Source of the DNA: Rhodosorus marinus CCMP1338
Taxonomy: Eukaryota > Plantae > Rhodophyta
DNA length: 64,000 bases
Assembly (NCBI GenBank): GCA_029953675.1
Contig: JAMWBK010000004.1
Location: forward strand, 2,046,001 to 2,110,000
Reading direction: 5' to 3'
This document shows, one piece after another, positions 3,001 to 55,799 of the stretch. The translations under genes were made by a program, and so were the position numbers. Numbering within the stretch: position 1 is the stretch's first letter; every line of letters starts with the position of its first letter. The notes under the pieces were generated by a model. The model worked only from the letters and a program-made list of their open reading frames with translations, did not search any database and had not been told where the DNA came from.

Positions 3001-6000
3001 GGTCGCACTTCCAACTTCCTCTTAGTTTAGCCTTCTGGCGGAGCACCTGCACTTGAGGCTCGTTCCTTGCTTTGAGTGTAGCCGCCTCTTCTCGGACTTG
3101 ATAGCCCTCGAATAGAGGGGAACGGAACACTTGCAGCTAGAGTTTAATTTTGGACACAAAGCAAACCGTCGTAGAGCTTTTTGTCTGTTTTTGCACTTAC
3201 GCCCATGAAATTGTCCCCGGAATGTTGTTCCTTTGCGGAAAAGGGGTGGGGCACTGACGCGCTCAGGTAGTGGCTCTTTTTTTTGGCCACCGGCACTCCT
3301 CTGAATCGATTGCTTGATGGATTTTCTTTAGCACTGGTTCTGTCAGCTGGGGATTGATTTGTATCCCTGGCTACACCTTGGCAGTAGAATACGTCGGCCC
3401 TTATCGACTGCACTTCGTCTTAGGGTCCCATCTGTTGAGCCTTTGCCATCGTAAGAGCTTTAGCGGTAGGTGGTCATTGGTCGACGGAAATTCTTTTGGA
3501 TCTTCCCCTTGTAGGGAATCCCGTATGACCAGCACTGGCTGAGCCTGTCGCTGGAATTCAACTGTAGTGCTCCTTGGCTTCACCTTGATGAAGCCAAAGC
3601 AAGAGCGCGCAGCTGATTCGTCTTGTCGAGCGCAGATTTTGGATCTCGGCTCGCAATTGGCATCCAAAAAGGTTAGGCGAAAATACGATTGTGATGTCGT
3701 CTGATCGTCTGATCTAGGACATAATTCGTACTTGGACGGTAAGCCACAACCCTTTTGCGGGGGTTGTAACCGTCTGATGATTGTCCCTTGATATTGGCCA
3801 ACACCATTTCCCCGCTTCCATCTTCATGGAACCACGTGGACAAAGCAATCTAGTCTCACCGGTTAATCTGTTCTGTGAGCCAGGCGGGAAACATCTTAAG
3901 TCCGCCCGGCGTTCGATCAAGTGCGAAATACCGATTGTCACCAAGCAATAATTCCCAATCAGGATACCCTCTTGACAGAATTGACAGCGTATGCATCTCT
4001 GAACCGGAGCGGACTTGTAAACCTGGAGCCGCATTTCAATATGGATTGTCCCGATGACCATCTTGAAGGTAGCAAACCCGATCTCGGTACAATAGCTGAG
4101 GGCGATCTCAATCAAAAAAAAGCACTTCTTAGCACATGGGGTATGAAAAGATCAACAGCCACGACCATCTCTCCACAAATATCTAGGCTCCAACCACACC
4201 AAACCATACCCTTTTCGCGTCCTGGTCTGAGATCCCGATTGTCCCATACTAGGTTCCAAAAGAAAAATCACGACATGCTCTCCCGCTACCGCTGGGAGGG
4301 AGCCGAAACCAAACAAACTATTCCCACATTTGATTTTTTTGGTCTGTCCCATTTCATGATTGCACCTTCTCCCTTACTCGAAACCTATTAATCTGACGTA
4401 AAACCTCTCGTCAATCAGATGTAAAACCTCAAAAATAGATAATTAAAAGGGGAGGGTCTTGTGCTCAATTATTCTAATATTTTGCAGAGCGCGAAAATCG
4501 AGTTGTTCTTCTTCGAGGGGAGAAAGAAATCCAACAATTGGTTCAGAAACCCTTCCAATAGAGCTCTAATAGAATTTTAGAAGGTTCTCATCCGTCCACC
4601 ACTACAGCGGCCAAAACATTAAAAAATTTCAACCCGAGAATGGGCTGTATTTGATTTCCGCTCCAAATTAGATATTCTCATGAAATATAATTTATGGAGT
4701 GATTTGATTAATCGTTCTCAGCCACCTCATTCAATGCAAGTTGTCAGTCCCATTGGATTGGGTGATAAAGGCTTTAATTTGTTTTTCGTTCTCGTTTCAC
4801 TGTTTCTTCTTCGTTTGTTTGTCCACATCCACGAAAAAAAAATCCGTCGCAGATGTTTTTGGGAGGCATGTCAGTGACTTCACCGTCGGCTGATCCCCGT
4901 AGGTTTTCCTGTGCTCCTGGGTGGATGAAAATTTTACAAACTCGTCGGTTGAGAGCGCATCCTGCTCAGAATATCGCTCGTATTCAGCGCGCCCGGATCT
5001 CAGTTGTTACAGGATGATTCGTGTTAAGAGTTGGATCGCGTGTGTGGAGTTTTCGGTTGGAAACCACTCGCAGTGGACGAAAGAGGCTCAATCACAATCG
5101 CTAGCCGATCAAGACTGGAGCTCCGAGCTCTAGAGGATGACAGGTATTGTACAGCGCGCACCCACTATGCCTGCTTCGGCTTAGCGAGGGGCGGTACTAG
5201 TGATCGAGTTTGGGTTCACGATAATGCTGGGGTTAGGCGTATGTCTCGCGACGCGGGAACATCGGAGCTTTACCCCCCCCCCCCTATTGGACCCCAGTGA
5301 ACTCCAATAACGAAACAGCTTTCGCCTTTTTGAGGACGAGAAAACCATCCGCATCGAAATAGAATCTCTTTGAAAAACAACCCCACTCCGAACAACCTTT
5401 TGTCTGTCATCGAGGATCACAAGGCATGATGAAGATAGCCTCTAGTAAAACGACAACCCAGGGCAGTCTAGTCCTTATCCTTTCACCTGGCAGAAAAACA
5501 AAGAACAGAAGACAAAACTCAAGTATGAATTAAATTTCCTACTTTTCCACGAAATTGATAAACTAAGTCTCGTGCGAAAACTTTTGTTTGGGGCTTTTGA
5601 GAAGACGCTTTAATTCATCAAACGAGAAAACGTGGAAAACATGTAAATCCGATTATTTTTAAACCGATTCTCTAAATAGACTCTTCCCAGGTTGCCCGTC
5701 GAGGGTTCTGTCCCTTACGTCCTGTCCCATTAAAAACCTTCCGGTTCAACCTATTCTGCCACTAAGAAGCAACTATTTCCTTTTCTATCCAATCGATTTC
5801 CTTTTTGTGAAAGAATATCCAATCATCTTCAGGGAAGCGATTTCTTACTGAATTCCTCAACCAATTTAATCCTTACAAGTTGGAAAACCAGCACTCCCCC
5901 ACTCCCCCCCCCCCGCCTTTCCTCTTCTTCTGCATTGTCTTTTTTCTTTTCATAAATGAAACAACGGCAATCGCACAAGAAAAATCCAGACCACTTAACC

Positions 6001-6775
6001 CAATCAAAACAAATCAAATAATTTAATATATATGTTGTATATGAAATTTATTATGCTCAAAAAAATTTGATGTCCAATAAAAGTCACCCCTCATGAGCAC
6101 CTTAGCTTTTAGTTCTTTGACAAGTAATTCAATGTATTTAGAGGCTTGGTGTTATGCTTCCTAAATATTGAAATACTTAAATTTGGTGAATTGAAAAGCA
6201 AAGGGGGGGTTGGGGCGGTCATCCTTTCGTCCGACTACTAAATGCTTTTAGTACTATATTAGTACAATCTTGTGGAAACTTCGAAGAAAATTTGGTGTGT
6301 TTGTTATGACAAACACTTTCAGTAGCTGTACAATTGGAACTTCAACGCGGGGCTCACTTCATCGATCACTCTCTGTGAAAGACAAACTCCTCGTGTTTGG
6401 AAAAGAAAAAGACGGTTTTACTTTTGTCTGGGGAGAGCCGATGCGTTCAGCACGTGGGAAAGGGCGTATTGGGAAAAAACCTTATATATTGGGGACGAAA
6501 TGATAGAGCGTTTTCCATGAAATGGAATTTTTTTATTGTTTTTCTTTGCTGAGATCGGATCCGTGTGCTTCGATCCCAATCTGGACATACACAGGGAAGG
6601 AAGCTGCTGTTCTTGCTTGAGTTTTTGTAGAACCCGTAAGAAGAAAACAGAAACGACAAAAAAGGAAAACTCTGAACATCACACAGACCCTGTTCTTGTG
6701 TTTTTGTAGTTTACGTGCTTTCATCAATGGGGAGGGAAAAAAAAAAGTTGATCAAGTTTTCTGCCGAGTTTCTGT

Positions 6776-16095: not shown

Positions 16096-17733
16096 CTACC
16101 CGGTACTGGTACCCGTTCCTTCTCGAAAGTTTTTCGCAATTTGTGCCCGGATTAGTGAGGATAGATCGGTCTTGTTCGACGGGCCGGTGTTCATTTCAGA
16201 CTTGTAGGGAAAGTTTGAGCTAGCATTGACCTCGTTCATGAGCTCAACGGCAAGGCGATCGTGAAGCGGTGAGTCAACCTTGATGAGGCCGAGGTCTTCT
16301 CTTCGGAGTAAAGTCTGTAGGGCAGTCAAGGCAGGCTCCGCTACAGACTTCGAAGCTTCCAGTTCGTTGGTGCTGATTTCCCGGATATCCACAGACTTTG
16401 AACCTCGGCTTGCTTTCCTAGTAGTCTCATTGAAATGGTCTTCCTGCTCCGGGGCCAAAATTGTTATTGTAGAGCCTTCGTTACCCCCGCGAGCAGTCCT
16501 TCCCACCCTGTGCAGGTATGTCTTAACGTGAACTGGGATGTCATAGTTGATGACAGTGTCAACCTGCGCAGCGTCAATTCCCCTGGACATGGCATCAGAG
16601 CAGATGACCACCAGTCTCTTATCCTTCCTGTTAAGCGATTCTACAACTTGCCTTCGTCCGTCGGAGCTCAACCCCGCCGAGAATTCCATCACTGCGAAAG
16701 AACTGCGTGTCGACACAGCTGCGAGCTGCAACAACCTGGCCAGCTTGTGTGAGGACTCCACAGACTTTGTGAAGACAATCGAAGAACTTACAGTACTAAC
16801 CGATGGATCATCCCACGGCCTGAGCAAGTTCAACAAACCAGCCAACTTCCACTGCTTGGAAGGAACAATGATCGCGGATTCACTCAGGGAGGCCGGCATG
16901 GAAAACTTGACCTTTTTTTGTGGCGTTTGGTGTTCCGTGGCGATTATCCTCCGGATGCATTGCAAGTGCAGACCTGCAAGCCTTTTCGGGTTTCTCGTCT
17001 GCGTTGCGGAAGCGAGGATCCTTCTCACTGGACAGCGAGGTGCACAAACGCCTTCCTTTGATCCTATGATCTCTCCACCTTGCTCACGAAAAATCTGCCC
17101 CGGCGTGGATTGACATCTCGTCACTTCATTGAAAAGCACATCTACCCAGTTGTTGTAGTGCTGCTGCAGCAGCCTGTCCGACTCATCGATAACCAAGAAC
17201 CTCAAGCTAACTAAGGAGAACCCAGGCGAGGACGTTATGTGATGAACTATTCGACCCGGCGTCGCTACCAGAATATCCGGAGAATTTTCTCTCAGCACTT
17301 CTGCTTCTGCGGCCATGGAACCACCCTGCCCTACCGCCAGTAAAGTAGTCAGCCCAAACGGCTTGCCCAAAGTATCGAAAACGGATTTCACCTGACTCGC
17401 GAGGTCTCGCGTAGGCGTGATAACCAATGCACGAATGCGTTTAAAGGAACAGGTCCTAAGACACTCAACCACTGGTACCGCGTATGCCAACGTCTTTCCG
17501 CTTCCTGTCGGAGACGAGATAATAACATCGCCTTGGAATACCGACCTCTCCAGCTTGAGGATTAGTGTAATCACCTCTGCCTGCATCGGGAACCAGGTCT
17601 CCACGCCCATAGATCGAACGACATCAGCAACTTCAGCTCCAAGGCCCACGTCTTCGATCGCGGTTTCACCTTCATCGTCAACGTACAGGTCTTCCAAAAT
17701 CTCTACCTGCACCTTGACTCTCGCCGCAGACAT
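16096..17733 (-). CDS. DBP6: DEAD-box RNA helicase DBP6/DDX51 (60S biogenesis)
   Basis: 545-aa ORF with Q motif (FPMQ), SPTGSGKTLAY, PTRDL, DESD, SAT, RGID and YLHRVGRTAR. A short upstream exon is possible. Confidence 0.9.
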   Translation of the reverse strand: MSAARVKVQVEILEDLYVDDEGETAIEDVGLGAEVADVVRSMGVETWFPMQAEVITLILKLERSVFQGDVIISSPTGSGKTLAYAVPVVECLRTCSFKRIRALVITPTRDLASQVKSVFDTLGKPFGLTTLLAVGQGGSMAAEAEVLRENSPDILVATPGRIVHHITSSPGFSLVSLRFLVIDESDRLLQQHYNNWVDVLFNEVTRCQSTPGQIFREQGGEIIGSKEGVCAPRCPVRRILASATQTRNPKRLAGLHLQCIRRIIATEHQTPQKKVKFSMPASLSESAIIVPSKQWKLAGLLNLLRPWDDPSVSTVSSSIVFTKSVESSHKLARLLQLAAVSTRSSFAVMEFSAGLSSDGRRQVVESLNRKDKRLVVICSDAMSRGIDAAQVDTVINYDIPVHVKTYLHRVGRTARGGNEGSTITILAPEQEDHFNETTRKASRGSKSVDIREISTNELEASKSVAEPALTALQTLLRREDLGLIKVDSPLHDRLAVELMNEVNASSNFPYKSEMNTGPSNKTDLSSLIRAQIAKNFREGTGTSTG

Positions 17734-25040: not shown

Positions 25041-26110
25041 CTATTGAGTAATCATTGTGCCAATGCCTTGGTCTTCGAACAATTCTAGGAGCAAGGAATG
25101 AGGTCTCCTACCGTCAACGATATGAGTCTCCTTCACCTGTGCCTTGAGTGCGTCAGTACAGCATTGTACCTGTCAGGTATTCGGTATGCATGAGTTTAGA
25201 TGCGGCTTTTGTGACAGTCTTGACTCGTTTGGGTGGTTTCTTGCTTTAAAATCACCTTTGGAATCATGCCACCGGAAATGATTCCTTCCGAGATGAGGTC
25301 TTGAGTTTGCCCATAGGTCAGACTCGAGTACAGTGTCTCTATCTCCTTGGGATCCTTCATGACTCCTGGAACGTCTGTCATCATGATAAGCTTCCTGGCT
25401 TTGAGCTCCGAAGCAATATCTCCTGCGAGCGTATCTGCGTTGATGTTATAGGCAGTTCCATCGTCGCTAGTGGCAATCGAAGAGACGACGGGGATAAAAC
25501 CACCGGAAATTAAAGTATCTATGAGCGTACTGTCCACACTTGTAACTTCTCCAACCAAGCCCAGATCTGGGTTCTTCTGCTTTGCGACGATCATCCTCGC
25601 ATCCTTCCCACAGATTCCCACAGCCTTTGATCCACATTGGTTAATAAGGGACACAAGATCCTTGTTCACTTTTCCAGCGAGGACCATTTCTACAACTTCC
25701 ATCGTTTGCTCGTCTGTGACTCTGAGTCCGTTTCGAAAAACAGCCTCGATATTAAGCCTCTTCAGCATAACGTTTACTGCTGGTCCTCCTCCATGTACAA
25801 GCACAACGTTCACTCCAAACGACCTCAAAAAAGCCACGTCGCCCACAACCTTAGCCTTCAACTCCTCAGAAGCCATCGCTGCCCCTCCATACTTGACCAC
25901 CACAACCTCACCAACCAACGCCTTCGCCTTATCCTTTAAAGCCTCCGGATCAACAACATACCCATCATCTACAACAGAAACATCGCCCAATCCAGGCAAC
26001 TTAACCCCAGACAACTGAACGCGAGCCAGTCTACTCCTTCTACGAGCACACCTTTCCCTACCACCATCAATCCCTTTCAACCCAATCACAGAATTCACGA
26101 ATCCAACCAT
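25041..26110 (-). CDS. argB: N-acetylglutamate kinase, cyanobacterial/plastid type, with transit peptide; two exons
   Basis: [38 protein letters not shown] and GGMIPK | [29 protein letters not shown], preceded by an N-terminal extension MVGFVNS... Confidence 0.96.
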
Positions 26111-28645: not shown

Positions 28646-30350
28646 TCAAGTCTTCGCCTTCTTCCGAGCTCGTTCCAATATCTCATGGTCGTCCTCTTCG
28701 ACTTCTATCCCTCCCCCCACGCCAGAATCAGAACAATCACCATCATCCGACTCCTCGGACGAATCTTCAGATGTGAACTCGGGGAACTCTTCAAGTTTCC
28801 TCGCGACGGACTTCACTTGCTGCAAAAGCTGTTTCTCTCTGATCCTCAAAGCGATGGCAATTTTTCGACGAACGGCGAGCTCTCCAGACCCTTCCCCCTC
28901 GATCACCTTCAGATCTTCTTCAAGGCTTGTGCGATATTGACCAAGTACCTTTTCAACGATAACATCGAGCTCGTCTAGCACTGATTCTTCCAAGCTCGCA
29001 CTATCCAATGCCTCGAAAAATCTGAAAAACCAAACACGACACCAAAAGGACACAGCTAAGCAAAAGCTTTTTCGCAGGCGTTTCGGATGTGACTGTGCTC
29101 GTATTGTTTAGGTTGCTGTGCTACTTGCGTTCAATACCAAAGTACGCCAGACGACCATGACTGCCCTGTCTAAAATTTTACTTACGCTTGAAGGGTTTCA
29201 ACCTGTGCGTCAACATCACTCTTATCGACTTGAGACTGGATCACTTGGGCTGACAAAGTCGCACCGCGAAGGAGCGCTAGCAGAGCGCACAGTCCGATGT
29301 ATCCACTCTTCCTGAAGCTGAACGGGAAGAAGTAGTCGCTCTTTAGATCGTATCCACAGAATTGTTCCAATAGTTCTCTTCTGGACAAATTCCTGTTCGT
29401 CGCGAAGGTTTCAGATGAGAAGCATATGGTTGAGCTCTCGCAATGGAATTGATCGCAGCAAAATCGACATCTGCTCCAAGTCGGTCTCACCGATTATCTA
29501 CTCGAAACGAGACAGGGCAGTTCTTAATCAGCCGTTCCACAGACTGAGATATGAACTTTCCGGGTAGCGAGATCTCATCGTAGCGGTTGACTGGTAGGTC
29601 AAAGTATGGTGATTCTATGTACCCATATAGTTGTACAAGTCGAGCATTTGCGAGGTTTCCGAAAGTATTGTATACCTCTTCTCCAATATCTATGTCCTTT
29701 ACGGCCTCCATTGTGAGATGATCGGGTCCAGATTCAAAAGTCTCCTCGTCGTCATAGAAAACCCTGGCATTGTTCAGAGTTACAGACGCGTTGAGAACAT
29801 CTGCGAGTGGGGTCATGGCCACTGAATCGTCGTTATACTCGCCGGACGAAAAGCTGTAGGCCTGTACTATACACAAGAGGTGGAGCCATTCCTCAAAGCT
29901 CATATCCAGACCTTTGGAGCGCAGAATAGGATTCACTATTTCTTTGAACCTTTTTTCGGCCTCCTGACGGGTAGGTGAGAGTTCGATTGAGCAGCCGCGT
30001 AGTTGATCGAGCTCCTCGGGTGTCCAAAGTATTGTCGCATTGAGCGTATTCCAGTGGATTTCGTCCAGGAATCGAAGGTATGGTACAAACTTTGAGCTGT
30101 CGCCCTTCAACATCTCGATCTTCAATGCCACGCCCGTTCTCTCGATGGCGGTCAGATCATTGGATATCGATCGGTCACCAACAATTCGCCATTCTTTGGG
30201 TACACGAAACAGAATTTCGCCGCGCGAGATGCTCTCCTTCGCGATCATTCCCCGGGCATGCAGACCGGGCAAAACGACAATCTCAACCTTGGGATTAAGG
30301 CAAAAGCCATGGCTATCGCACCATTCTGTCAAGACATCGAGCGTTTTCAT
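28646..30350 (-). CDS. SETD6/Rkm4-like N-lysine methyltransferase; multi-exon
   Basis: ARGMIAKESISRGEILFRVP, SKFVPYL, LWTPEELDQLRG, AMTPLADVLNAS and GEEVYNTFGNLANARLVQLYGY, plus an LSMT-type C-terminal domain (YRTSLEEDL..RRKIAIALRIREKQLL). Confidence 0.85.
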
Positions 30351-30962
30351 CAAGATAGAGCGCTCACTTACGATCACAGGCCATGCATACTAACACAAGC
30401 AGCTTTATTCGTCCAGACTTTGCCAGCCAAGACATCAGCCCAGGCATCCCGGACTCCTGACTCTTTCAAGTAAGCAGCGCAGCACCATTCCGTCATTTTC
30501 AAGGACTTTCCAAGGGTTTTCGATCGATGACGATCTGGAGGCCCTTGAAACTATATCAGGATAGAAGAGCTACTGCAATCCAGCCAGCCTTTCAATTCTT
30601 GCATCTTGTTCTAGGTCTCAACGGCTCCAACTCGAACGAGTTTCTCTTGAAGGAAACCAGGAGGGAAGCCGTAAAGTTCCGAAATCGCTAGATCAAGCTG
30701 TTCGAGGGTTCTTTTCTGCTGAAGCTTGGTCACATTAGTGGTGAAGAAGTTTAAGACGAGACGAACTAGACGGTTGTTCGCAGAGCGAAGAGGCACAGCC
30801 AAGATGCGCACCAGGGACAAGTCCCTACCAAGTACTCCCTTTGCCTAGGTTGTTGACCTCAGTGACCCACATGCCGAAATCAAAGCCTTTAGCACAGGAC
30901 GGAGCTACAGAAAGGCCATCAATATCCTCACTTGCCGTGAAACCTAATCAAGATATCAACCT

Positions 30963-31152: not shown

Positions 31153-32130
31153 CTACAGCACAGCTAAGGGCGAGTCGGGTATGCTGGTTGACTTGACAGA
31201 GGAGTTGGAAGTCTCCATCGAGACGCGATGCAAAGCTGAGCGTATGGACATGGCTGGGGTGACCATCTTTCTTCTCGGGCCGGTTCCGGTAGCCTGGCCG
31301 GGCTTATTCTTGTCCGGAGCTGAGAAGCGTCGACCAAAAGCAGCGCCGAGGTCAAGGTTCTGGAAATCGGTGCTGTTCATTGGAGTGTCTTGTTGGGAGA
31401 TTTCCTGGAACAGCTCATCCGAAGCGACATCGGTCGTTCGTGATACCTCCCGAACGAGACTTTTTAAGTTACAGCACCCTTCAAATTCACCAACAATGGT
31501 GAGCAGATCAATCGCTTTCCCTGGGAGGTGCTGGTGCGGGAAATGTTCTTGGGTCATGGTTACTGCCGCCGAGATGGCCTTGTTGCTCAACAACATGCCC
31601 ATCGTGTCCTCTAGATATCGCTTATTGGCGTTGAGGCACTCAATTGATTGTGTGGCTGTCATTTCCCTGACCTCCACGGCTGTGAAGTAGCAGTAAAAGT
31701 TCGAGATACGCTGCAGCGATTTGTAACTGTTCGTAGTTGCAACACAAGTCAGGTCTCCCAAAGCAACCATTCTGCACAGGTCCCTGAACACGCTCCCACT
31801 GCAGCAGCACTGCCCTCCGAATATGGTTGAACAAGAACCATCTTCTAGTACTTTCAGAAGCTCGATGTTCGGAACGAACAGCACCGCTTTCTTTTGGGAG
31901 GCCAACTTGGCATACCCATCAAAGCTCTCCTCAAAGATTCCGCAGTCAGCGCTCTCTGTCACCAACCTGGCGACGTCCACTTCAATCGTAGGCACCGGGA
32001 AAACCTCCTTCAAACCGTTAAACACCGACCGCTTTCCAACGCCCGGCCTCCCATGCAGAATCACACTCCGATCATCCAACAAGCACTTGATCGAAGTAGA
32101 AATCTCGCAATCCCTGAACATTATCTCCAT
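31153..32130 (-). CDS. Stand-alone ClpA/ClpB (Hsp100) NBD1-like AAA+ domain with degenerate catalytic motifs
   Basis: Collinear with Clp NBD1: IMFRDCEI (VIGRDEEI), VILHGRPGVGKR (Walker A), CGIFEESF (RGEFEERL), VLFVPNIE (Walker B ILFIDEIH), ALGDLTCVATT, AISAAV and LPGKAIDLL (LPDKAIDL). Intronless, 325 aa. Confidence 0.85.
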   Translation of the reverse strand: MEIMFRDCEISTSIKCLLDDRSVILHGRPGVGKRSVFNGLKEVFPVPTIEVDVARLVTESADCGIFEESFDGYAKLASQKKAVLFVPNIELLKVLEDGSCSTIFGGQCCCSGSVFRDLCRMVALGDLTCVATTNSYKSLQRISNFYCYFTAVEVREMTATQSIECLNANKRYLEDTMGMLLSNKAISAAVTMTQEHFPHQHLPGKAIDLLTIVGEFEGCCNLKSLVREVSRTTDVASDELFQEISQQDTPMNSTDFQNLDLGAAFGRRFSAPDKNKPGQATGTGPRRKMVTPAMSIRSALHRVSMETSNSSVKSTSIPDSPLAVL

Positions 32131-47600: not shown

Positions 47601-49501
47601 CTCGAGGGTGGACAAGTCTTTGCTCGGGTTGGAGCTGGTTGATTTGGAACTTGCAGGCCACGTTGGGTCTTGGCTGACCGACCGGTTGACTGATCTTTGT
47701 GCTTCGGATAAGCTCATGGCCTCAAAAGAGGAGATCAGCTCAGATTCTCACTTCTTCCACGGTGAGCGGTACAGGGGATAAGCATGACTTTGGCCCTTTC
47801 CCAATTTGGGGCTTAACTCGGTCCGAATTGATTTTCCCAGGAATGGTTCAGGAGGACTATCAAATCGTCTCCCGAGTAGTACACTATAGGAGGCGAGTTA
47901 CGATACGGGAAGCTGAGTTGTCCCGGTTTCGATGCTCATGGAGACCTTTGTATGGGTTGAGTTTAAGGAGTGCGGTGACAATAACCAGTCAACTGCAGGA
48001 AGCAAAGGTTTGTTGCCTAGTACTCGTTGAATTTGGATGGCTTGAATTCGGATAGCGCGTGGGATTATAAGCTGAAGTGACTCGCGATTATTTTCTCCTC
48101 AGGAAAACTTCCAGAAAAACCGCTGGGATGGTTTCAACAACAGCATTCTACCACTGCTCCCAACCTTGAACACGTTCGCAAATGCAGCACTCCCAATAAC
48201 GGAACGGTTTTGCACATGCATTACCCCAGCGCTTTCATCCGGAAGTAGACTGAGCTACAAAGGCAAGCAAAGAGCCGCGAATATTGAGTCGCGCGCGTTT
48301 CGCGAAGTCCAAGCGTACTCGAGACCTGTTGAAAACGCATTTCGATCAGCCTTCGTAAGACAAAGAGTAGCACTTCCGGACGCGCGACTTGTGCAATGGG
48401 ATTGTGGCAAGCTCCAGGTTCGTGGACGTTAGCGGACTTTTCCTAAGTTCTTCTTGAAAATTTAAACTCGGTTCACGTCCGTGTTCCAGGCTCTAAGCAA
48501 GCTATTGGTTACTCTCAAGGAGGGGAAACACCGCTGCTTAATATTTACACAAATGTCGAAAGTCCTTGATATTTTGGAGAGCTTTTTGAACCTTCATCGT
48601 CATCGGTATTTACGACTCGATGGGAGTACCAAGACGGAAGACCGACAAAAACTAACAGAGCGGTAGGAAATTCGAGCAGTCATAGTTCATGTGTGAATGG
48701 AGTCCGTAGAGAAAAAGGAACTGAGGTCAGCTCAGTGTCTAACCAATATTCGTCGTTACTTCAGGTTCAATACGGACGATAGGATATTCTGCTTCATTCT
48801 TACAACAAGAGCAGGTGGTGTGGGTCTTAATTTGACAGGCGCAGACTGTGTCTTGTTCTACGATAACGATTGGAACCCTCAGGTAGATGCTCAGGCACAG
48901 GATCGCGCCCACCGGATTGGACAGACAAGAACCGTTCACATCTATCGACTCGTAAGTGAGAAAACCATCGAGGAGAACATTCTGGCCAAAGCCGATCAGA
49001 AGCGAAGCCTGGAGTCCATCGTCATACAACAGTACGTACCAGAAACATAGCTTCATTCCACAGAGAAATCTGTAGTCTGGCTAACTTGGACTGCGTTTCG
49101 TCAGGGCCGGGTTCAACAAGGACGGATTCGAGAAGCTGAACGTCATGGACATTCTGAAACCGACGGAAGGACCGGATGGCCCCGTGGATGGAGGAATCAA
49201 TACCGAAATGGGCGCTGCCCTTGAAGTGGACGAGGACGTTATTGCTATACAGGAGCGGGCTTTGGCAATAGAAGTAAGCCATTTCGCCCCCACCTCTCTC
49301 TCTCGTCATTCAAATTTCCTTTGCTGAACTATTGTGTTCGTCCTCACACAGGATTTTGGAGAAGAACCAACCGCAAAAGCAGACACTCAAGCAAACCAGA
49401 CCATGTCGTTGGCGGACATTGAAAAGTCGTTAACCGCAATTCAAAGATATGCGCTGGATACGTTTAGGTTGTTCTATAACTTCACAGCAACTAACTCTTG
49501 A
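41683..49501 (+). CDS. SWR1: SWR1/PIE1/SRCAP-family SNF2 chromatin remodeller (H2A.Z deposition); many exons
   Basis: HSA domain ([20 protein letters not shown]), [61 protein letters not shown], split ATPase insert, [31 protein letters not shown] and [10 protein letters not shown]. Start and end are approximate. Confidence 0.97.
45243..45345 (+). repeat. 51-bp in-frame tandem duplication inside a SWR1 exon ([12 protein letters not shown](E/G)RRV x2)
   Basis: Units start at 45243 and 45294. Confidence 0.95.
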
Positions 49502-49547: not shown

Positions 49548-50390
49548 TCTTAAAAAATAAATTTTTTAAAGCTTGCTCGTTCTGATCCACGTCCAGCCGC
49601 GTGGGGACGAAAGCCAGCCCCAATCTGAGGCGTTCAAATCAAGCTGCTTAGCTCGACATACTGAGATTTTGACTGGTCAGGTTCTAGTCAGCGGCGCTCG
49701 CGATTACCAATGCTCGCAAATCGGTTCCCGCAATTTAATCCAAATCAGGCACCCCCTTCGCCTATTGCTCTCTACCATGCCTGAGCCGATACAGCCCACT
49801 TCGTGTCTGTCGGGTAACCCATTGTCGGACGGGTACGAGCAATCCAGATAAATCACGACATAATAGCATGCAGGTTATCTACTAGCTGATCTGTAAATAG
49901 GCTTGAAAGAACTGCTTACTCCCTCGCAGTAAAAGCTCATGAAGAAGATCCCCGGCGGCCTCTGTGGCCAATGACTAGGAACCAAAAAATGCCACCTTTA
50001 ATCGTATCTCCTTCGGACAATTAAAATGCTAAATCGCGGATGAAACAAAACAAAAAAGCAAGCTGTGCTTAACCCCACTGGCATAGGCCAGGCCAGAAGG
50101 ATTCTTTTCAACCTTCGCAAGTTTGCAACCACCTGCGGACACTGCAAAAAAAAAATACGTTCTACTAAAATCGTCCTTATCCACTCAATGCGTTGATCAG
50201 CCCTCTCGAGAACGTCGATGCGTCACCATCAAATCACGTCTTGCTCCAACTATACTTTCGCACGGCTAATTACAAGCTGGCTAAAATCAAAGTGGTCAAG
50301 ATCAAGACCATCTGATCCGTACATTCGCAGAACCAGTGAGATACGGTTGTTCCCCTTCGACAAACGTACCGCTGCGAACGCACAACCGCA

Positions 50391-53300
50391 TTAGGCTGTG
50401 ACACTCGGGGGCCTCACATGGGTCCAAGTAGGCTTCTTAAGCGTACGATCCTTCGATGGAACAAAGTCAACGCCACGACTAGCCAAGCTTGCAGCATCAG
50501 CACGTGAGGCCCCGTGCGGAATTGAGCTCACAGCAGCGTATCCAGTCGGTACCAGTGCTGCTGGTAGCTTTGTCTGAGCATGCAGCCTAAGCCATTCTTC
50601 GCTGCATCTGGCACCTACGATGCGTGCCAAGAAGAAGTTGGTTACTAAGAACGCGCGCGCTCTAGGATGGAAATGAGCTTACCTTTTGCCAGCACGACGC
50701 GGCTATGGATGTCTACACCGCCCTTTGGATTATCAACAGTATAGGCGATACAGTCTTCGACCGCCGGATGCATGACCATCGCATCCTCAACCTCATCAAG
50801 GTCGATCATGATCTCCTTTGTCACGACATCCGGGTCATCGAAGTCGTCCAAGTCAAGTCCCGCAGCACGATATACGGTTTCTGTGGGCGCGGGGGCCCTT
50901 GCTCCTGCGTCTTCCTTCATTTGCGTAGCCATTGTAGCTGAAGCGACGGCGAGAGTGCTCTGCAGGACACAAACGGATGAATCGATTAGTAACAATAATC
51001 AGCTACAGAACCGGGAGAGTCCTTTCTCTCACCGCTCCAGCCGCTGCAACCGCCAGCGATTTAGTATTGTCATGGGCCTTTTCGGCCCCAGAATGCAGTC
51101 CCCTGGTTTGCGCCTTCAAAGCCGCAGAATCGTCGCCAGCTGCGTTGGCCTCCAGGAGAACCTTTTCAATCGCTTCTAGGTTATACTCAGTGAATTGCGG
51201 GGTGGAAGCAATTCTATAAGCATCCTCTCTTAGCACGAGCGCCTCTTGCTCCAACTAGGATTAAAAGGTGAAACCGATACAAAGGTCAGAAAAATGTGAC
51301 GTGTGTGTGCGGCGTCTAACTAACTCAGGTAATTTTCATGCTTACCTCTGCACGACGAGCTTTTCCGTCCTCAACTCGTTTCCTCAACTCGACGTGCTCC
51401 TTTGGGTACACAGCGAGCAGCTTCTCCTGGATTGGGCTCTGTTTTGATTGAAGCACTTGCAGCTCTGACAAAGCCTTCGCATAACTCTCCTTGTCCGTTT
51501 GAGAGCGCTTTTGATGCATGATGAGCATTGCACTTAGCGTATCGTCGAGGTGCAGATACATCTTCCTCTTCCAAGCCAGGTTCTCCTCCTCGATGTCCCT
51601 GAGCCTAGTTTGATGATCCTCAAGCATTCTCGTCTGCTCAGCCAACTAAAATAACGGAACAAAAACGAAAGCAAGACGCTTTAGCCGGAGCTGCTAGCCC
51701 TCAAATAAACCCTTGAGAGGTCAATTACCGCGGCTTCGGTTTCCGCGAGATTCTCCTTCTCCCAGTCGATGAGCGTTTCTGTTTTCACTTCTCTCTCAGT
51801 TAAGATCAGGCCGCGCTTGAGCTCATCTGCTTTCCGGATCTCAAGATATGCGAACGCCAGTGCGAACTCGTCCTCACGAATCTTCCTGTCCGCCTCCAGA
51901 GTCTTCAAATACTCTGCGGCCTGTCTCTGTTTCTCCTCTTCAAGAAGCATGTCGTAGTGTCCCTTACGGGCGATGTAAGCCTCATCAAGTTTCCGCTCTA
52001 TATCTCGCTGATGGATAGCCCGAAGAGAGGAGAGTTCCTGTTCGCGTATTTTCTTCAGCCTCTGACGGTCTTCAAGCAACTTCACGCTACCCTCGGTCTT
52101 GAGCTTCTCCTCCTCTTCGGCGAGCTTCCGCAAGAATTCTTCCTCAACCGTCTTTCTTGTCTCCATCATGTCCTTTTCGCTCATCGCGATAACGCAGTAT
52201 ACTTCTTCTTCTGCCTCGCTCACTGCTCCAGCGGTGTCTATGTCCGGTATCGATTGCAAGACCGCTTCGATTGCGTCTTGTTCCTCCTCGTCGTTGTAGT
52301 AGTAAATAAAGCTGACATTGTTGAAGCGTACAGTGCGACCCATTTTCGCCTTGAAGGTATCTGGTGGTGGGATGTCCGTAGACTCTATCCTACGCACAAA
52401 TACTCGCTTCATGTCTTCTGAAGTAGTGCGAGGTTGATCGTTTCCCATGAACTGCGTTATGGTCATCCATTCCTGGTGATATTTGTCATTCTCGAGATCC
52501 TTCAAAGTCAGCTCCTGTCCATGCAACGTAGAAACAACCATCCAGGTACCGGCGGCCATGGCAGGAACCGCAACTCCGGCAGCGATGTCGGTCGCGGAAG
52601 GAAGAGTCTCCCTCGCTATCTCCGCACTTGCCTGTCTCGCTGCCAGTTCCTCCGAAGCCTTTCGTGCGTTCTCTAAATCTTCCTGTCTTCTCGCAGCTTG
52701 CTTCGCCGCCAACTCCGAGTCGAGTGCTCTTTCGCGATCTGACTCTGCGGCTAACCTGGCGGCCTCCGCGGCCTCCGCAGCTGCCAGAGCGGCCATTCGC
52801 CTCTCCTCTTCTTCCAGCTGAGACTGACGCCGAGCTTCTACTTCAGCTTTCCTGGCATCCCTAGCAGTACCATGCAATATAAGACATCCGTTCTCATCCA
52901 ATTCTCCGCGGTCACCGGTCGCAAACCATTCCTCAACCTCGTCTTCTCGGTTAAATGTGAGGATTTTCCCAAATTTGTTCTCCATCTCATCGTTGAGGTA
53001 GCCAACGGTCACGTTGTCGCCCATCACCGCGATATCCCCGATCTCGCCTGGTCCCAGCATCTCCCTGTTCTCCGGGTCGGTACTGAAAATTGCAATGTCC
53101 AAACCATCGCAGGTCTGTCCAAGAGTTCCATGCTTCACATGTTCTAGCGTGTTAGAAGAAGCTATTCCTGAACACTCTGGAAGTCCATATGATTCTAGTA
53201 TCGGCACCCCGATGGTCTCCTCATATGAACCAATCTCTTTCGAGTCCATGAACAGACCAGATAGCCGAATAAATCTGAGCGTTGTTCCTGCAGTTGGCGG

Positions 53301-54413
53301 AGCCGGGTTGGCTTCTTTTATCTCGTGCAACACAGTAGCGTCTGTTGAGAACCAGGAAATACCATGTTCCTGGACCAAATCCCAGAAAGTGACAGGATCG
53401 AACTGCCCCCCCGGGGGTATTACAAGCATACCACCTGAATAGAAAGAAGTCAAGAGGACCAGAATACCGTGCACTGCGTGAATGGGCTTCTGCCAAATTG
53501 TAGCACCCGACGAATGCAGTTCGTAAGTTTGGAAAAATATTTTCGCAGCGCTGCAGATATTCCTGTGCGTTAGAGGAAGAACAAGAAGATCAACGTCCGC
53601 TGCAGTGGCCAGGACAGCATCCTAACGGGAAAACAAAAACTCCGATGAATCAGTGGAAATCTCAGTCGAAATTCTTTTCTCTGCAAAAGAACGAACCTCG
53701 TCGTCATCTAAAGTGTAGTCCGAGGCACCTCCATGCCACGCCGGCTCTCCGATGGGCCCCCCACCAGCGTCCAAGGTGACCCCGTGATTCGTAGAACGAG
53801 CGGTCGACCAAAGCTTCAACTCCATCGACGTTGCCACCGCAGCTGCCTTTGTGTACACATCCGTGTCAGTTCTCGCCTTGGGAAGTATGTGTTGTGTGAT
53901 AATCAAAGCTGCCCTGAGGTTTTCCACGGCTGCCTTAATTTGGTCAACATCCAACTCGGGATTTACCGGGGCAGCGATAGCATGGACCCATTCAATGGCG
54001 AGGAACGTGACGACAGCCTCCACGCTATTGTTGAAGAGCATTGCAACTCTCGTTTTCGGTCGCACCCCGTTCGACCTCAGCGTATGCGCAACATCCTCTA
54101 TCTACAAGGTCAGCCGAGAAGGCCTGTTAGCTTCCAACTTTTAACAAGTACTATCTTGGAACTGACGAGACGACCCTACCATCTTATAGACCTCGATGTG
54201 GCTATAAACGACTTTTCGACCTTCCGCGGAGGTAAAGGATATGGCAGGCTTCGCTGCATACTTGCTTTTTGGGAGATCCTTAACGATGTGCAGCCTTACA
54301 ATCTCCTCGACTTCATCAGCACTGAGCTCGTTGATAAAAGCTGACTTCTTCCTCATCAGCAAGACTTGCTCGGTCTTCTTAGAATCTTGATGATGCAGAT
54401 TGTTATCCGCCAT
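50391..54413 (-). CDS. AAE3/PCS60-like adenylate-forming enzyme fold, predicted inactive, with about 600 aa of coiled coil inserted at the hinge; seven exons
   Basis: Collinear with oxalate-CoA ligase: AAPVNP, PLTHRNI, PIHAVHG, GGQFDPVTFW, LRFIR, PILESYG, GDNVTVGY, WFATGDRGELDENGCL; after the insert come IDLDEVEDAMVMHPAVED and EEWLRLHAQTKLPAALVP. All introns are GT-AG and keep the frame. Confidence 0.88.
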
Positions 54414-55799
54414 TTTTTTTTCCCTCAAAACCACTTGCACGCAACTAATCTCACTACGGCAGACAAAACTCCGCCCCCCTCCCACACCCCCTCAGACCCA
54501 CCTAAACCAGTCCTCGGACTCAAACCTGAGAATCCCCGACCAATTACCTCTCACATCATCTTCAAGACTCCACCACCTCCCTTCCTCATATAACCCCTTC
54601 CGCAGCCTTGCCCAAAATCCCTTCCGAAAAAGCAATCACGCTTCCTCCCCCAACCACTAACAACCCCCTTAACCCCTCCCTCATCAACCAAAAACCCCCA
54701 AAAGCCCATCCCCCCTCCTTTTTGCGGATCTCCACTTCAAAACCAGAAAAACTGGGCCTATCCTCAAAACAATCGAATTCAAAAAAAACAACCCCCCCGG
54801 AAGGCCCCTCCTAAAAACATTCGGACCACTTCCATTGATAATCCGATATTTTAAAACAATTTTCTTGGCCAGAAAACACTACAGCCATCGCAATACTGCC
54901 CAATGATGCTTTTCCCTCGAAAAGTACATTTGGAATGCTTGTCCAAAAATCTGCATTAAACTAATCAAAAAACTGAAAATGATCGTATTTCCCCCCTCCC
55001 AGATATTCCCCATATTCCCGGTATTGCTCACAACACCCCCCCCCCCCTTGTCCATCCTACCGTTTTTTAAATTTTCCACAGCAATCTAGATTAACTATTT
55101 TCCGGGGGTGTGAAAAAGGCTTTAATAAATTTCATCATTCAGATTCCATCTGAGGAAAAACAACTTTCCACCCGTTAGAGTTCGTATATGAATTGTCCAC
55201 CCGTTTTAAAGATCGGATTCAGAACCCCAGTAGGAGAGAGGTCTTGAGATCAAATACAAAACACACACAGGCTCGGAACTGTTCTCAGATGCCATTCATA
55301 TTTCAGTAGAAAACCGAAGTCGCCTAGAGATATCTAAAGAAGAGCTTCCATCACCATATTAATTATCATTATTAAAGTAGCATAGGATCAGATCCACAGA
55401 ATATGCGTATTATTCTTAATAAAGATCTACTATTGAATAACCGTAATTAAAATATTTCCTTTCTCTAAATCTAAGAATTGCTCGGTTTGGAGAGAGCGAT
55501 TTCACAATGAATTGTTTTATTGTTGTTTTTCAACGTTTCCTCTAAACGACCAGAATCGAAGGGTAGGATGGACTTTCCTTTTTTGTTGTTTTATGTTGGA
55601 TTTTCTACCCCCCCGCCGTCGGCGATGTGGAAAAGCTTAGGAAATGGATGGAAACTATGGGGAAAGGGATTGGTACTGGGGTTGGCGTGGTGAGGTGGTC
55701 ATCCTACTGGTGCAGGGGTCGTTGGGATGGTCGAGGAGTTAGGTGAGCAGGATAGGCGAAGGGTTGTATCAATTTCCTGGTACGAAGTGGTTTTGAAAC

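Follow-up and report, generated by a model that had tools for sequence, protein, structure and literature searches.

A red-algal family of putatively non-catalytic ANL proteins with a helical insertion at the domain hinge

In a 64,000-nucleotide stretch of the genome of the red alga Rhodosorus marinus CCMP1338 (contig JAMWBK010000004.1, positions 2,046,001 to 2,110,000; hereafter the window, whose own coordinates are used throughout), a seven-exon gene on the minus strand encodes a protein of 1184 amino acids in which an ANL-type fold is split at its hinge by 591 residues. We consider it fairly probable that this protein is a non-catalytic ANL pseudoenzyme, derived from an ancestor related to oxalyl-CoA synthetase and acting as a scaffold or adaptor with a helical arm inserted at the hinge. 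The ANL fold and the idea of pseudoenzymes are known already; the hinge-insert architecture and the family that carries it are uncharacterised. No description of the protein was found in the literature on ANL pseudoenzymes and red-algal oxalyl-CoA synthetase or under the accession numbers, nor, in the literature searched, any description of a catalytically dead free-standing ANL protein or of a structural insertion exactly at the hinge. An earlier note on this DNA, made from the sequence alone, had taken the architecture to be undescribed. This agrees with the literature, but the protein is not a one-off, given that about 20 protein clusters, whose named members are all red algae, share the hinge insert.

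A degenerate ANL fold interrupted at its hinge

Both subdomains of an ANL enzyme can be recognised. The N-terminal domain (residues 1-468; 52857..54413, minus strand, two introns included) was delimited with Pfam, AlphaFold2 and Foldseek, and matches the Pfam family AMP-binding (PF00501) at 5e-37, with 128 bits against a cut-off of 29.9. The C-terminal subdomain (residues 1060-1160; 50466..50836, minus strand, one intron included) matches AMP-binding_C (PF13193) over residues 1074-1145, at 2.8e-7 and 31.8 bits against a cut-off of 24.5. Both are predicted to fold well in an AlphaFold2 model based on a 47-sequence alignment, with a predicted local distance difference test score (pLDDT) of about 95 for each. 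Membership of the ANL superfamily is thus indicated for the N- and the C-terminal domains alike by sequence and model. Pfam found no carrier or condensation domain in the protein. Among sequences in the PDB the best matches are oxalyl-CoA synthetases, namely 6qjz (1.5e-41), 5ie0 (8e-38) and Pcs60 (2e-32), and the next class, MatB, reaches only 5e-14. Foldseek likewise returns 6qjz, 5ie2 and Pcs60 as the top matches of the full model at an E-value of 1e-35; these alignments cover about 438 columns, which correspond to the N-terminal domain, and so are uninformative on how the C-terminal subdomain docks.

Residue roles for LsOCS and AtAAE3 were taken from PMC8905533 and mapped through an alignment with active AAE3-like sequences, and motif retention was counted in 25 non-redundant members of the family described below. 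The A3 P-loop region (LATAADVDLLVLPLTH, residues 217-232; 53565..53612, minus strand) reads LATAADVDLLV instead of (T/S)SGTTSRPK, with SGTTSRPK aligned to A-ADVDLL, and the P-loop (T/S)(S/G)G(T/S)(T/S)GxPK is kept in none of the 25 members. In A4, LsOCS His221, assigned to the α-phosphate and to gating of the tunnel (PMC8905533), is replaced by Ala and survives in a single member (1/25); His223 is retained. Both residues specific for oxalate in AtAAE3, Ser289 and His319 (PMC8905533), are Gly in the window protein, and each is kept in 0/25. The A5 remnant ESYGLPECSG (residues 356-365; 53166..53195, minus strand) preserves the Tyr and the Glu, with Thr changed to Pro and the oxalate His to Gly; across the family Tyr319 and Glu323 are each found in 24 of the 25 members and the Thr in none. 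The A7 motif WFATGDRG (residues 445-452; 52905..52928, minus strand) is retained in the alignments, its Thr, Gly and Asp being kept in 24, 23 and 24 members, respectively. At the A8 hinge, ILHGTARD (residues 461-468; 52857..52880, minus strand), the protein reads HGTARD against GRxK(E/D), so that, in LsOCS numbering (PMC8905533), Arg416 is changed to Thr and the hinge Lys418 to Arg. The A10 remnant IPHGASRADA (residues 1142-1151; 50493..50522, minus strand) is without the catalytic Lys, which is kept in 0/25. Finally, LsOCS Ala297 and Ser298, which line the AMP site, are Leu and Phe in the window protein and may fill the AMP pocket.

These alignments indicate that the catalytic motifs are gone in the whole family and not just in the window gene. 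The earlier note had read the same changes in A3, A5, A8 and A10, a likeness to AAE3/PCS60, the lack of a type 1 peroxisomal targeting signal (PTS1) and a loss of chemistry with both subdomains kept, and all of this is borne out: the protein ends in ...PPSVTA, PDB sequences, Foldseek and a neighbour-joining tree each place oxalyl-CoA synthetases closest, and motif loss was seen in every member examined. Its further suggestion that the protein might sense acyl groups fares less well. In 24-25 of the 25 members Ser289, His319, the A5 Thr and the A4 His have given way to other residues, which speaks against sensing of oxalate or acyl groups in the canonical pocket, and canonical oxalate recognition appears very unlikely.

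ANL enzymes are textbook cases of catalysis by a large domain rotation about a hinge. The short contiguous A8 hinge is not kept here: 591 residues separate the hinge residue from the C-subdomain hairpin. Pairwise alignments with reference sequences lose the N-domain match at residues 467-468 (GTAR/D against GRIK/E) and resume in the C-domain at residue 1074, 13 reference residues downstream, DPDVVTKEIMIDLD (residues 1060-1073) occupying the place of the a8 β-hairpin. The insert therefore sits directly after the hinge residue, at the A8 position first proposed for it. Delimited by alignments and AlphaFold2 (residues 469-1059; 50837..52856, minus strand, three introns included), it is made up of the 376 residues of exon 3 that follow the hinge, 100 residues of exon 4, 74 of exon 5 and the first 41 of exon 6, within a few residues of the 379, 100, 74 and 46 originally claimed.

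The predicted make-up of the insert is composite. A first long helix rich in Ala, Glu and Arg (residues 466-546; 52623..52865, minus strand; pLDDT up to 93) is followed by a disordered stretch (residues 547-585) and by an α/β module (residues 586-694; 52179..52505, minus strand), recognised from the model (pLDDT 60-83) and the alignment and present in long-form members only. Three long helices (residues 695-821, 828-923 and 925-960; 51207..52178, minus strand, two introns included; pLDDT 70-85) come next, and residues 961-1066 are modelled with low confidence and are rich in Ala and Thr. Within the tail of the insert, a profile hidden Markov model (HMM) of short-form inserts identifies a helical module conserved family-wide (residues about 895-989; 51120..51495, minus strand). 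The α/β module is conserved in four other long-form sequences, with 24 invariant positions, and has no match in Pfam, among PDB sequences or by Foldseek, where its model (pLDDT 67.5) reached a best E-value of 1.0 against the PDB. Pfam searches with three pieces of the insert gave noise only (E of at least 0.014, every match under its cut-off), and phmmer found no significant match of the insert among PDB sequences. The insert alone, used as query in a word-index homolog search, gave no matches, not even to itself, low-complexity candidates having probably swamped the search.

The description of the insert as about 600 residues of coiled coil, which the earlier note had given, is over-simple in view of the α/β module and the disordered linkers. 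A crude test of a/d occupancy points to coiled-coil-like spacing in the helix at residues 466-546, which alone beats shuffles (4/1000); helices 695-923 do not. Since heptad and 3.5-residue periodicity are weak or negative in the conserved helices by these crude tests, we do not adopt "coiled coil" as fact. By model and alignments the insert consists of a helical spacer that evolves fast and varies in length, and then of a helical module that is conserved; in this lineage the α/β module and some 200 residues of highly conserved helices are present as well.

A family spanning five red-algal classes

HMMER, run exhaustively against 1.84 billion representative proteins, recovered a top group scoring 240-460 bits (P0082 and P0084-P0099, 834-1315 amino acids), separated by a gap from ordinary ANL enzymes, which score at most 182 bits. 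A word-index search contributed further members, bringing the family to about 20 protein clusters at 50% identity, with the dead motifs and the hinge insert common to all. One other high-scoring protein, P0083 (3462 amino acids), owes its score to its nature as a multi-module non-ribosomal peptide synthetase (NRPS) and is not a family member. Every member has the degenerate P-loop, the hinge insert, AMP-binding_C and a C-terminal K-x-P-x-W tail, the last being LKKPTWTHV in the window protein (50415..50441, minus strand) according to the alignments. AMP-binding_C contains a strongly conserved stretch, GAR.SE.WL.L....LP...VP..F, and positions W176, W200, G203, D206 and D210, located before the dead P-loop, are invariant and specific to the family.

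Named members come from Gracilaria changii, Compsopogon caeruleus, Porphyridium aerugineum and Porphyra umbilicalis, together with a second Rhodosorus marinus paralog, and span five red-algal classes; relatives with the insert, for which the earlier note had proposed to search red-algal proteomes, do occur there. No named member falls outside the red algae, with the reservation that most members are read-archive contigs and that Cyanidiophyceae and non-red lineages were not specifically surveyed. In databases the proteins go by "hypothetical protein" or "AMP-dependent synthetase/ligase domain-containing protein". In metagenomes, 13 family-like loci turned up with 33-41% identity; six lie on contigs that carry the label marine metagenome, and the 13 brought no further taxonomic information. 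In the neighbour-joining tree of the N-terminal domain the family receives 100% bootstrap support, its grouping with AAE3-like sequences 88% and the long-form clade 70%; this branching pattern indicates a monophyletic family, sister to the AAE3-like sequences sampled.

The hinge insert varies in length from 174 to 715 residues (median about 296). Many members carry hinge-proximal windows rich in Glu, Arg and Lys (ER/K), in which these three residues make up 70-83% and opposite-charge i/i+4 pairs number 0.4-0.5 per residue. Short-form members, from which the α/β module is absent, are the family majority. A profile of the final 190 residues of their inserts matches the window protein at residues 847-989 or thereabouts (22.7 bits, E 2.5e-6), and all 600 of 600 shuffled controls score negative. 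With the insert tail homologous family-wide, the hinge insertion therefore arose once, in the ancestor of the family. The α/β module and the roughly 200 residues of conserved helices were gained later, in the Rhodosorus lineage.

Two other sequences bear on the long form. A genomic contig from SRR22824290 (L001) encodes a protein with 50% identity to that of the window and the full long architecture. Within its positions 4226-6745, introns 1 and 3 are placed as in the window gene, intron 2 of the latter is absent, and a fourth intron lies about 38 codons upstream of window intron 4, which points to intron turnover within the family. The second Rhodosorus marinus paralog (P0090/P0247, EukProt EP00189; 1178-1226 amino acids, about 34% identity) is also of the long form, with dead motifs, hinge insert and α/β module all present, so the long form has been duplicated.

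Gene model, transcripts and surroundings

The gene model was obtained by translating the minus strand of 50300-54500 and linking open segments via canonical splice sites. It consists of seven exons (54413..50391, minus strand) with a coding sequence of 3555 nucleotides, and its six introns, of 68-91 nucleotides each, are GT-AG throughout. All exons lie on the minus strand. Exon 1 (54180..54413, start ATG at 54413-54411) encodes residues 1-78 and exon 2 (53697..54101) residues 79-213; exon 3 (51729..53621; residues 214-844) supplies the remainder of the N-terminal domain, the hinge, the first helix, the α/β module and conserved helices. Exons 4 (51346..51645; residues 845-944) and 5 (51033..51254; residues 945-1018) precede exon 6 (50683..50959), which encodes residues 1019-1110 followed by a phase 1 junction and spans the passage from the insert into the C-terminal subdomain. 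Exon 7 (50391..50614) encodes residues 1111-1184 and the TAA stop, and its sequence is conserved in L001 and in short-form relatives.

The nearest matches in protein databases come from Rhodosorus marinus, namely KAJ8905908.1 ("hypothetical protein NDN08_002410") and products of MMETSP transcripts. One MMETSP product (P0077) and one JGI product have exactly 1184 amino acids and are collinear with the gene model. Two intronless JGI contigs of 4.0 kb (L003 and L004) carry the 3555-nucleotide open reading frame (ORF) without interruption. The first of these, from a related strain (L003; JGI 3300016967), is 91.8% identical to the spliced coding sequence, without gaps and with all six junctions matching, in agreement with the exon limits given above. 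On the genome it falls into exactly seven aligned blocks between 54480 and 49978, so the transcript, with its 5' and 3' untranslated regions (UTRs), extends approximately over 49978..54480 on the minus strand. Because the cDNA contigs are collinear over all six junctions, this is a single expressed gene and the seven exons form a single mRNA, as the earlier note had supposed for an intact multi-exon gene.

Selection was estimated from one pairwise comparison, of the window coding sequence with L003 (Nei-Gojobori). The ratio of nonsynonymous to synonymous substitution rates (dN/dS) is 0.098 over the whole coding sequence, 0.074 in the N-terminal domain and 0.20 in the C-terminal domain. Within the insert, residues 469-572, which take in the first helix and the greater part of the disordered linker, are the fastest-evolving part of the protein (0.31); the ratio is 0.036 for residues 573-715, the block with the α/β module, 0.032 for the helices of residues 716-900 and 0.15 for residues 901-1026. 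The gene is functional, nuclear and under strong purifying selection.

The deposited NCBI model, KAJ8905908.1 (P0001, 1176 amino acids), departs from the 1184-residue model at two sites: it removes 30 codons within exon 3 as an intron (GMLVIPPGGQFDPVTFWDLVQEHGISWFST; 53436-53525, minus strand), and its 3' end differs after ...VDFVPSKD (50391-50470, minus strand). The cDNA contigs and the orthologs back the 1184-residue model and not the deposited version. Some related-strain MMETSP isoforms retain intron 6 (50682-50615; P0002 ends ...VLAKGKLIFILEGASS) or intron 5 (51032-50960; P0074 ends ...AAGAVREDSPIL), giving truncated products in which the C-terminal subdomain is partly or wholly missing. 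This may be an assembly effect or genuine intron retention.

Directly upstream of the start codon lies a strongly C-rich, pyrimidine-rich tract (54420-54800); as the cDNA 5' end falls at about 54480, the tract covers the 5' UTR and the putative promoter. A 203-amino-acid ORF starting with ATG (53733-54344, plus strand), antisense to exons 1 and 2, is most likely a chance ORF. On the other side of the gene, a neighbour whose 3' end has a typical C-terminal motif block of SNF2-family helicases (48697-49050, plus strand) stops some 0.9 kb short of where the studied transcript ends, and the two genes therefore converge. Other large ORFs in the window (16096-17733, 25196-26110, 29487-30377 and 31153-32130, all on the minus strand) match ordinary eukaryotic families, namely DEAD-box helicase, amino-acid kinase, SET domain and AAA lid (Clp/Hsp100-like); no link to the studied gene was seen among them.

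Relation to known systems and possible roles

By sequence, fold and tree the closest relative is oxalyl-CoA synthetase (EC 6.2.1.8; plant AAE3, grass-pea LsOCS, yeast Pcs60), with which the window protein has in common the two-subdomain ANL fold, A4 His223, the A5 Tyr and Glu and the A7 TGD. Unlike that enzyme, it has replaced the P-loop, A4 His221, the oxalate Ser and His, the A5 Thr, the A8 Arg and the A10 Lys, has a 591-residue insert at the hinge and lacks a PTS1 of the Pcs60 type; in addition, an N-terminal segment, a C-subdomain surface and the K-x-P-x-W tail are conserved in a form particular to the red-algal family.

The nearest precedent for insertions into an ANL fold is found in the interrupted adenylation domains of bacterial NRPS (e.g., TioS A8-M-A9), where they fall between a2-a3, a6-a7 or a8-a9, consist of catalytic methyltransferase domains of 260-390 residues and leave the host active in its assembly line (PMC8341866). 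Both cases have foreign sequence inside the ANL fold, and large insertions near or within the C-terminal subdomain are tolerated. In contrast to the NRPS inserts, the one described here lies inside a8, right after the hinge and upstream of the a8 β-hairpin, and is helical, of low complexity and non-enzymatic by every test run, in a host that is free-standing and apparently dead.

Two further comparisons concern the helices. In SMC and Rad50 proteins the two ends of one chain form a globular head, and a helical insertion of great length lies between them; the head is an active ABC ATPase and the insertion an antiparallel coiled-coil hairpin. The resemblance is one of layout only, with no homology, and the head here is an inactive ANL fold. 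ER/K single-α-helices (SAH) are a type of spacer. The ER/K-rich, length-variable and fast-evolving hinge-proximal windows of many family members are similar to them, unlike the first helix of the window protein, which is Ala-rich with 0.14 opposite-charge i/i+4 pairs per residue.

The scaffold or adaptor reading, which we favour, can be put as follows. An ancestor related to oxalyl-CoA synthetase (AAE3/Pcs60) would have lost the residues that handle ATP and oxalate. A helical segment would have entered its chain after the A8 hinge residue and ahead of the first β-hairpin of the C-terminal subdomain, and this arrangement of dead ANL fold and hinge insert would then have spread across red algae. 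Neither adenylation nor thioester formation would occur. The dead N-terminal domain and the tethered C-terminal subdomain may instead serve as binding modules, with W176, W200, G203, D206 and D210, the GAR.SE.WL.L stretch of the C-terminal subdomain and the K-x-P-x-W tail as likely interaction sites. The insert would act as a spacer or arm that sets the separation of the subdomains and carries further interaction surfaces. Several points weigh against this reading. Scaffolding is the default interpretation of any conserved dead enzyme, and the role assigned here is itself inferential. The heptad test does not demonstrate a coiled-coil or SAH nature of the helices. Moreover, 23-24 of the 25 members still have Tyr319, Glu323 and the A7 Thr-Gly-Asp, which could reflect residual binding of adenine or ribose by a sensor and not a passive scaffold.

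This last point leads to an alternative scenario, which we regard as rather unlikely, in which the protein is a ligand-gated switch. Here the dead ANL head would bind an adenosine-containing ligand (AMP, ADP, CoA or similar), and closure of the C-terminal subdomain on the N-terminal domain would alter the geometry of the helical arm, domain alternation being reused as a conformational sensor. Such a role is favoured by the retention of the adenine-stacking Tyr, the Mg-binding A5 Glu and the ribose-binding A7 Asp in 24/25 members and of the A7 Gly in 23/25, by strong constraint on both subdomains and by the location of the insertion exactly at the pivot of domain alternation (PMC8905533). Against it, the phosphate- and ribose-contacting P-loop, A4 His, A5 Thr, A8 Arg and A10 Lys are lost, the Leu and Phe at LsOCS Ala297 and Ser298 of the AMP site may fill the pocket, and the retained residues could be purely structural. 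We rate the switch below the scaffold, since few of the phosphate and ribose contacts survive and the pocket Ala and Ser have been exchanged for bulky residues.

A bolder proposal, to which we give little credence, is that ANL domain alternation has been turned into a non-catalytic mechanical or conformational device in a family apparently restricted to red algae, in five classes of which it occurs. A head formed by the dead N- and C-terminal subdomains would open and close, possibly on an adenosine-containing ligand or a partner protein, and the helical arm, with the α/β module as an extra element in Rhodosorus, would transmit or space the movement. The result would be an SMC/Rad50-like layout made from an acyl-CoA synthetase fold, in the service of some cell structure peculiar to red algae.

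Less probable again is that the protein is still an enzyme, performing non-canonical chemistry with the ANL fold or the α/β module. The low dN/dS of the block with the α/β module (0.036 at residues 573-715) and the Trp, Asp and Gly positions that are invariant in this family alone and lie close to what was the active site could be taken in this sense, but no catalytic motif of any known family was found in the insert by Pfam, PDB or Foldseek searches, the α/β module is absent from the short-form majority of the family, and the canonical ANL catalytic residues are all gone. An artefact, be it a pseudogene, two adjacent genes fused by a wrong model or an assembly chimera, is scarcely credible: although the deposited NCBI model departs from ours at two sites and intron 5 or 6 is kept in some assembled transcripts, full-length spliced cDNA contigs exist from two independent sources, dN/dS is 0.10, and matching architecture is encoded by an independent genomic contig at 50% identity (L001) and by about 20 further clusters. 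The pseudogene and two-gene versions in particular are ruled out by the spliced cDNA contigs, dN/dS and the seven-block genome alignment.

Databases label members of the family "AMP-dependent synthetase/ligase" or "acyl-CoA synthetase", and they should be left out of these enzyme classes when red-algal metabolism is reconstructed. The family also represents a natural experiment on what the ANL fold is able to do without its chemistry, and its conservation under strong selection in five red-algal classes suggests an unrecognised, lineage-specific cellular function.

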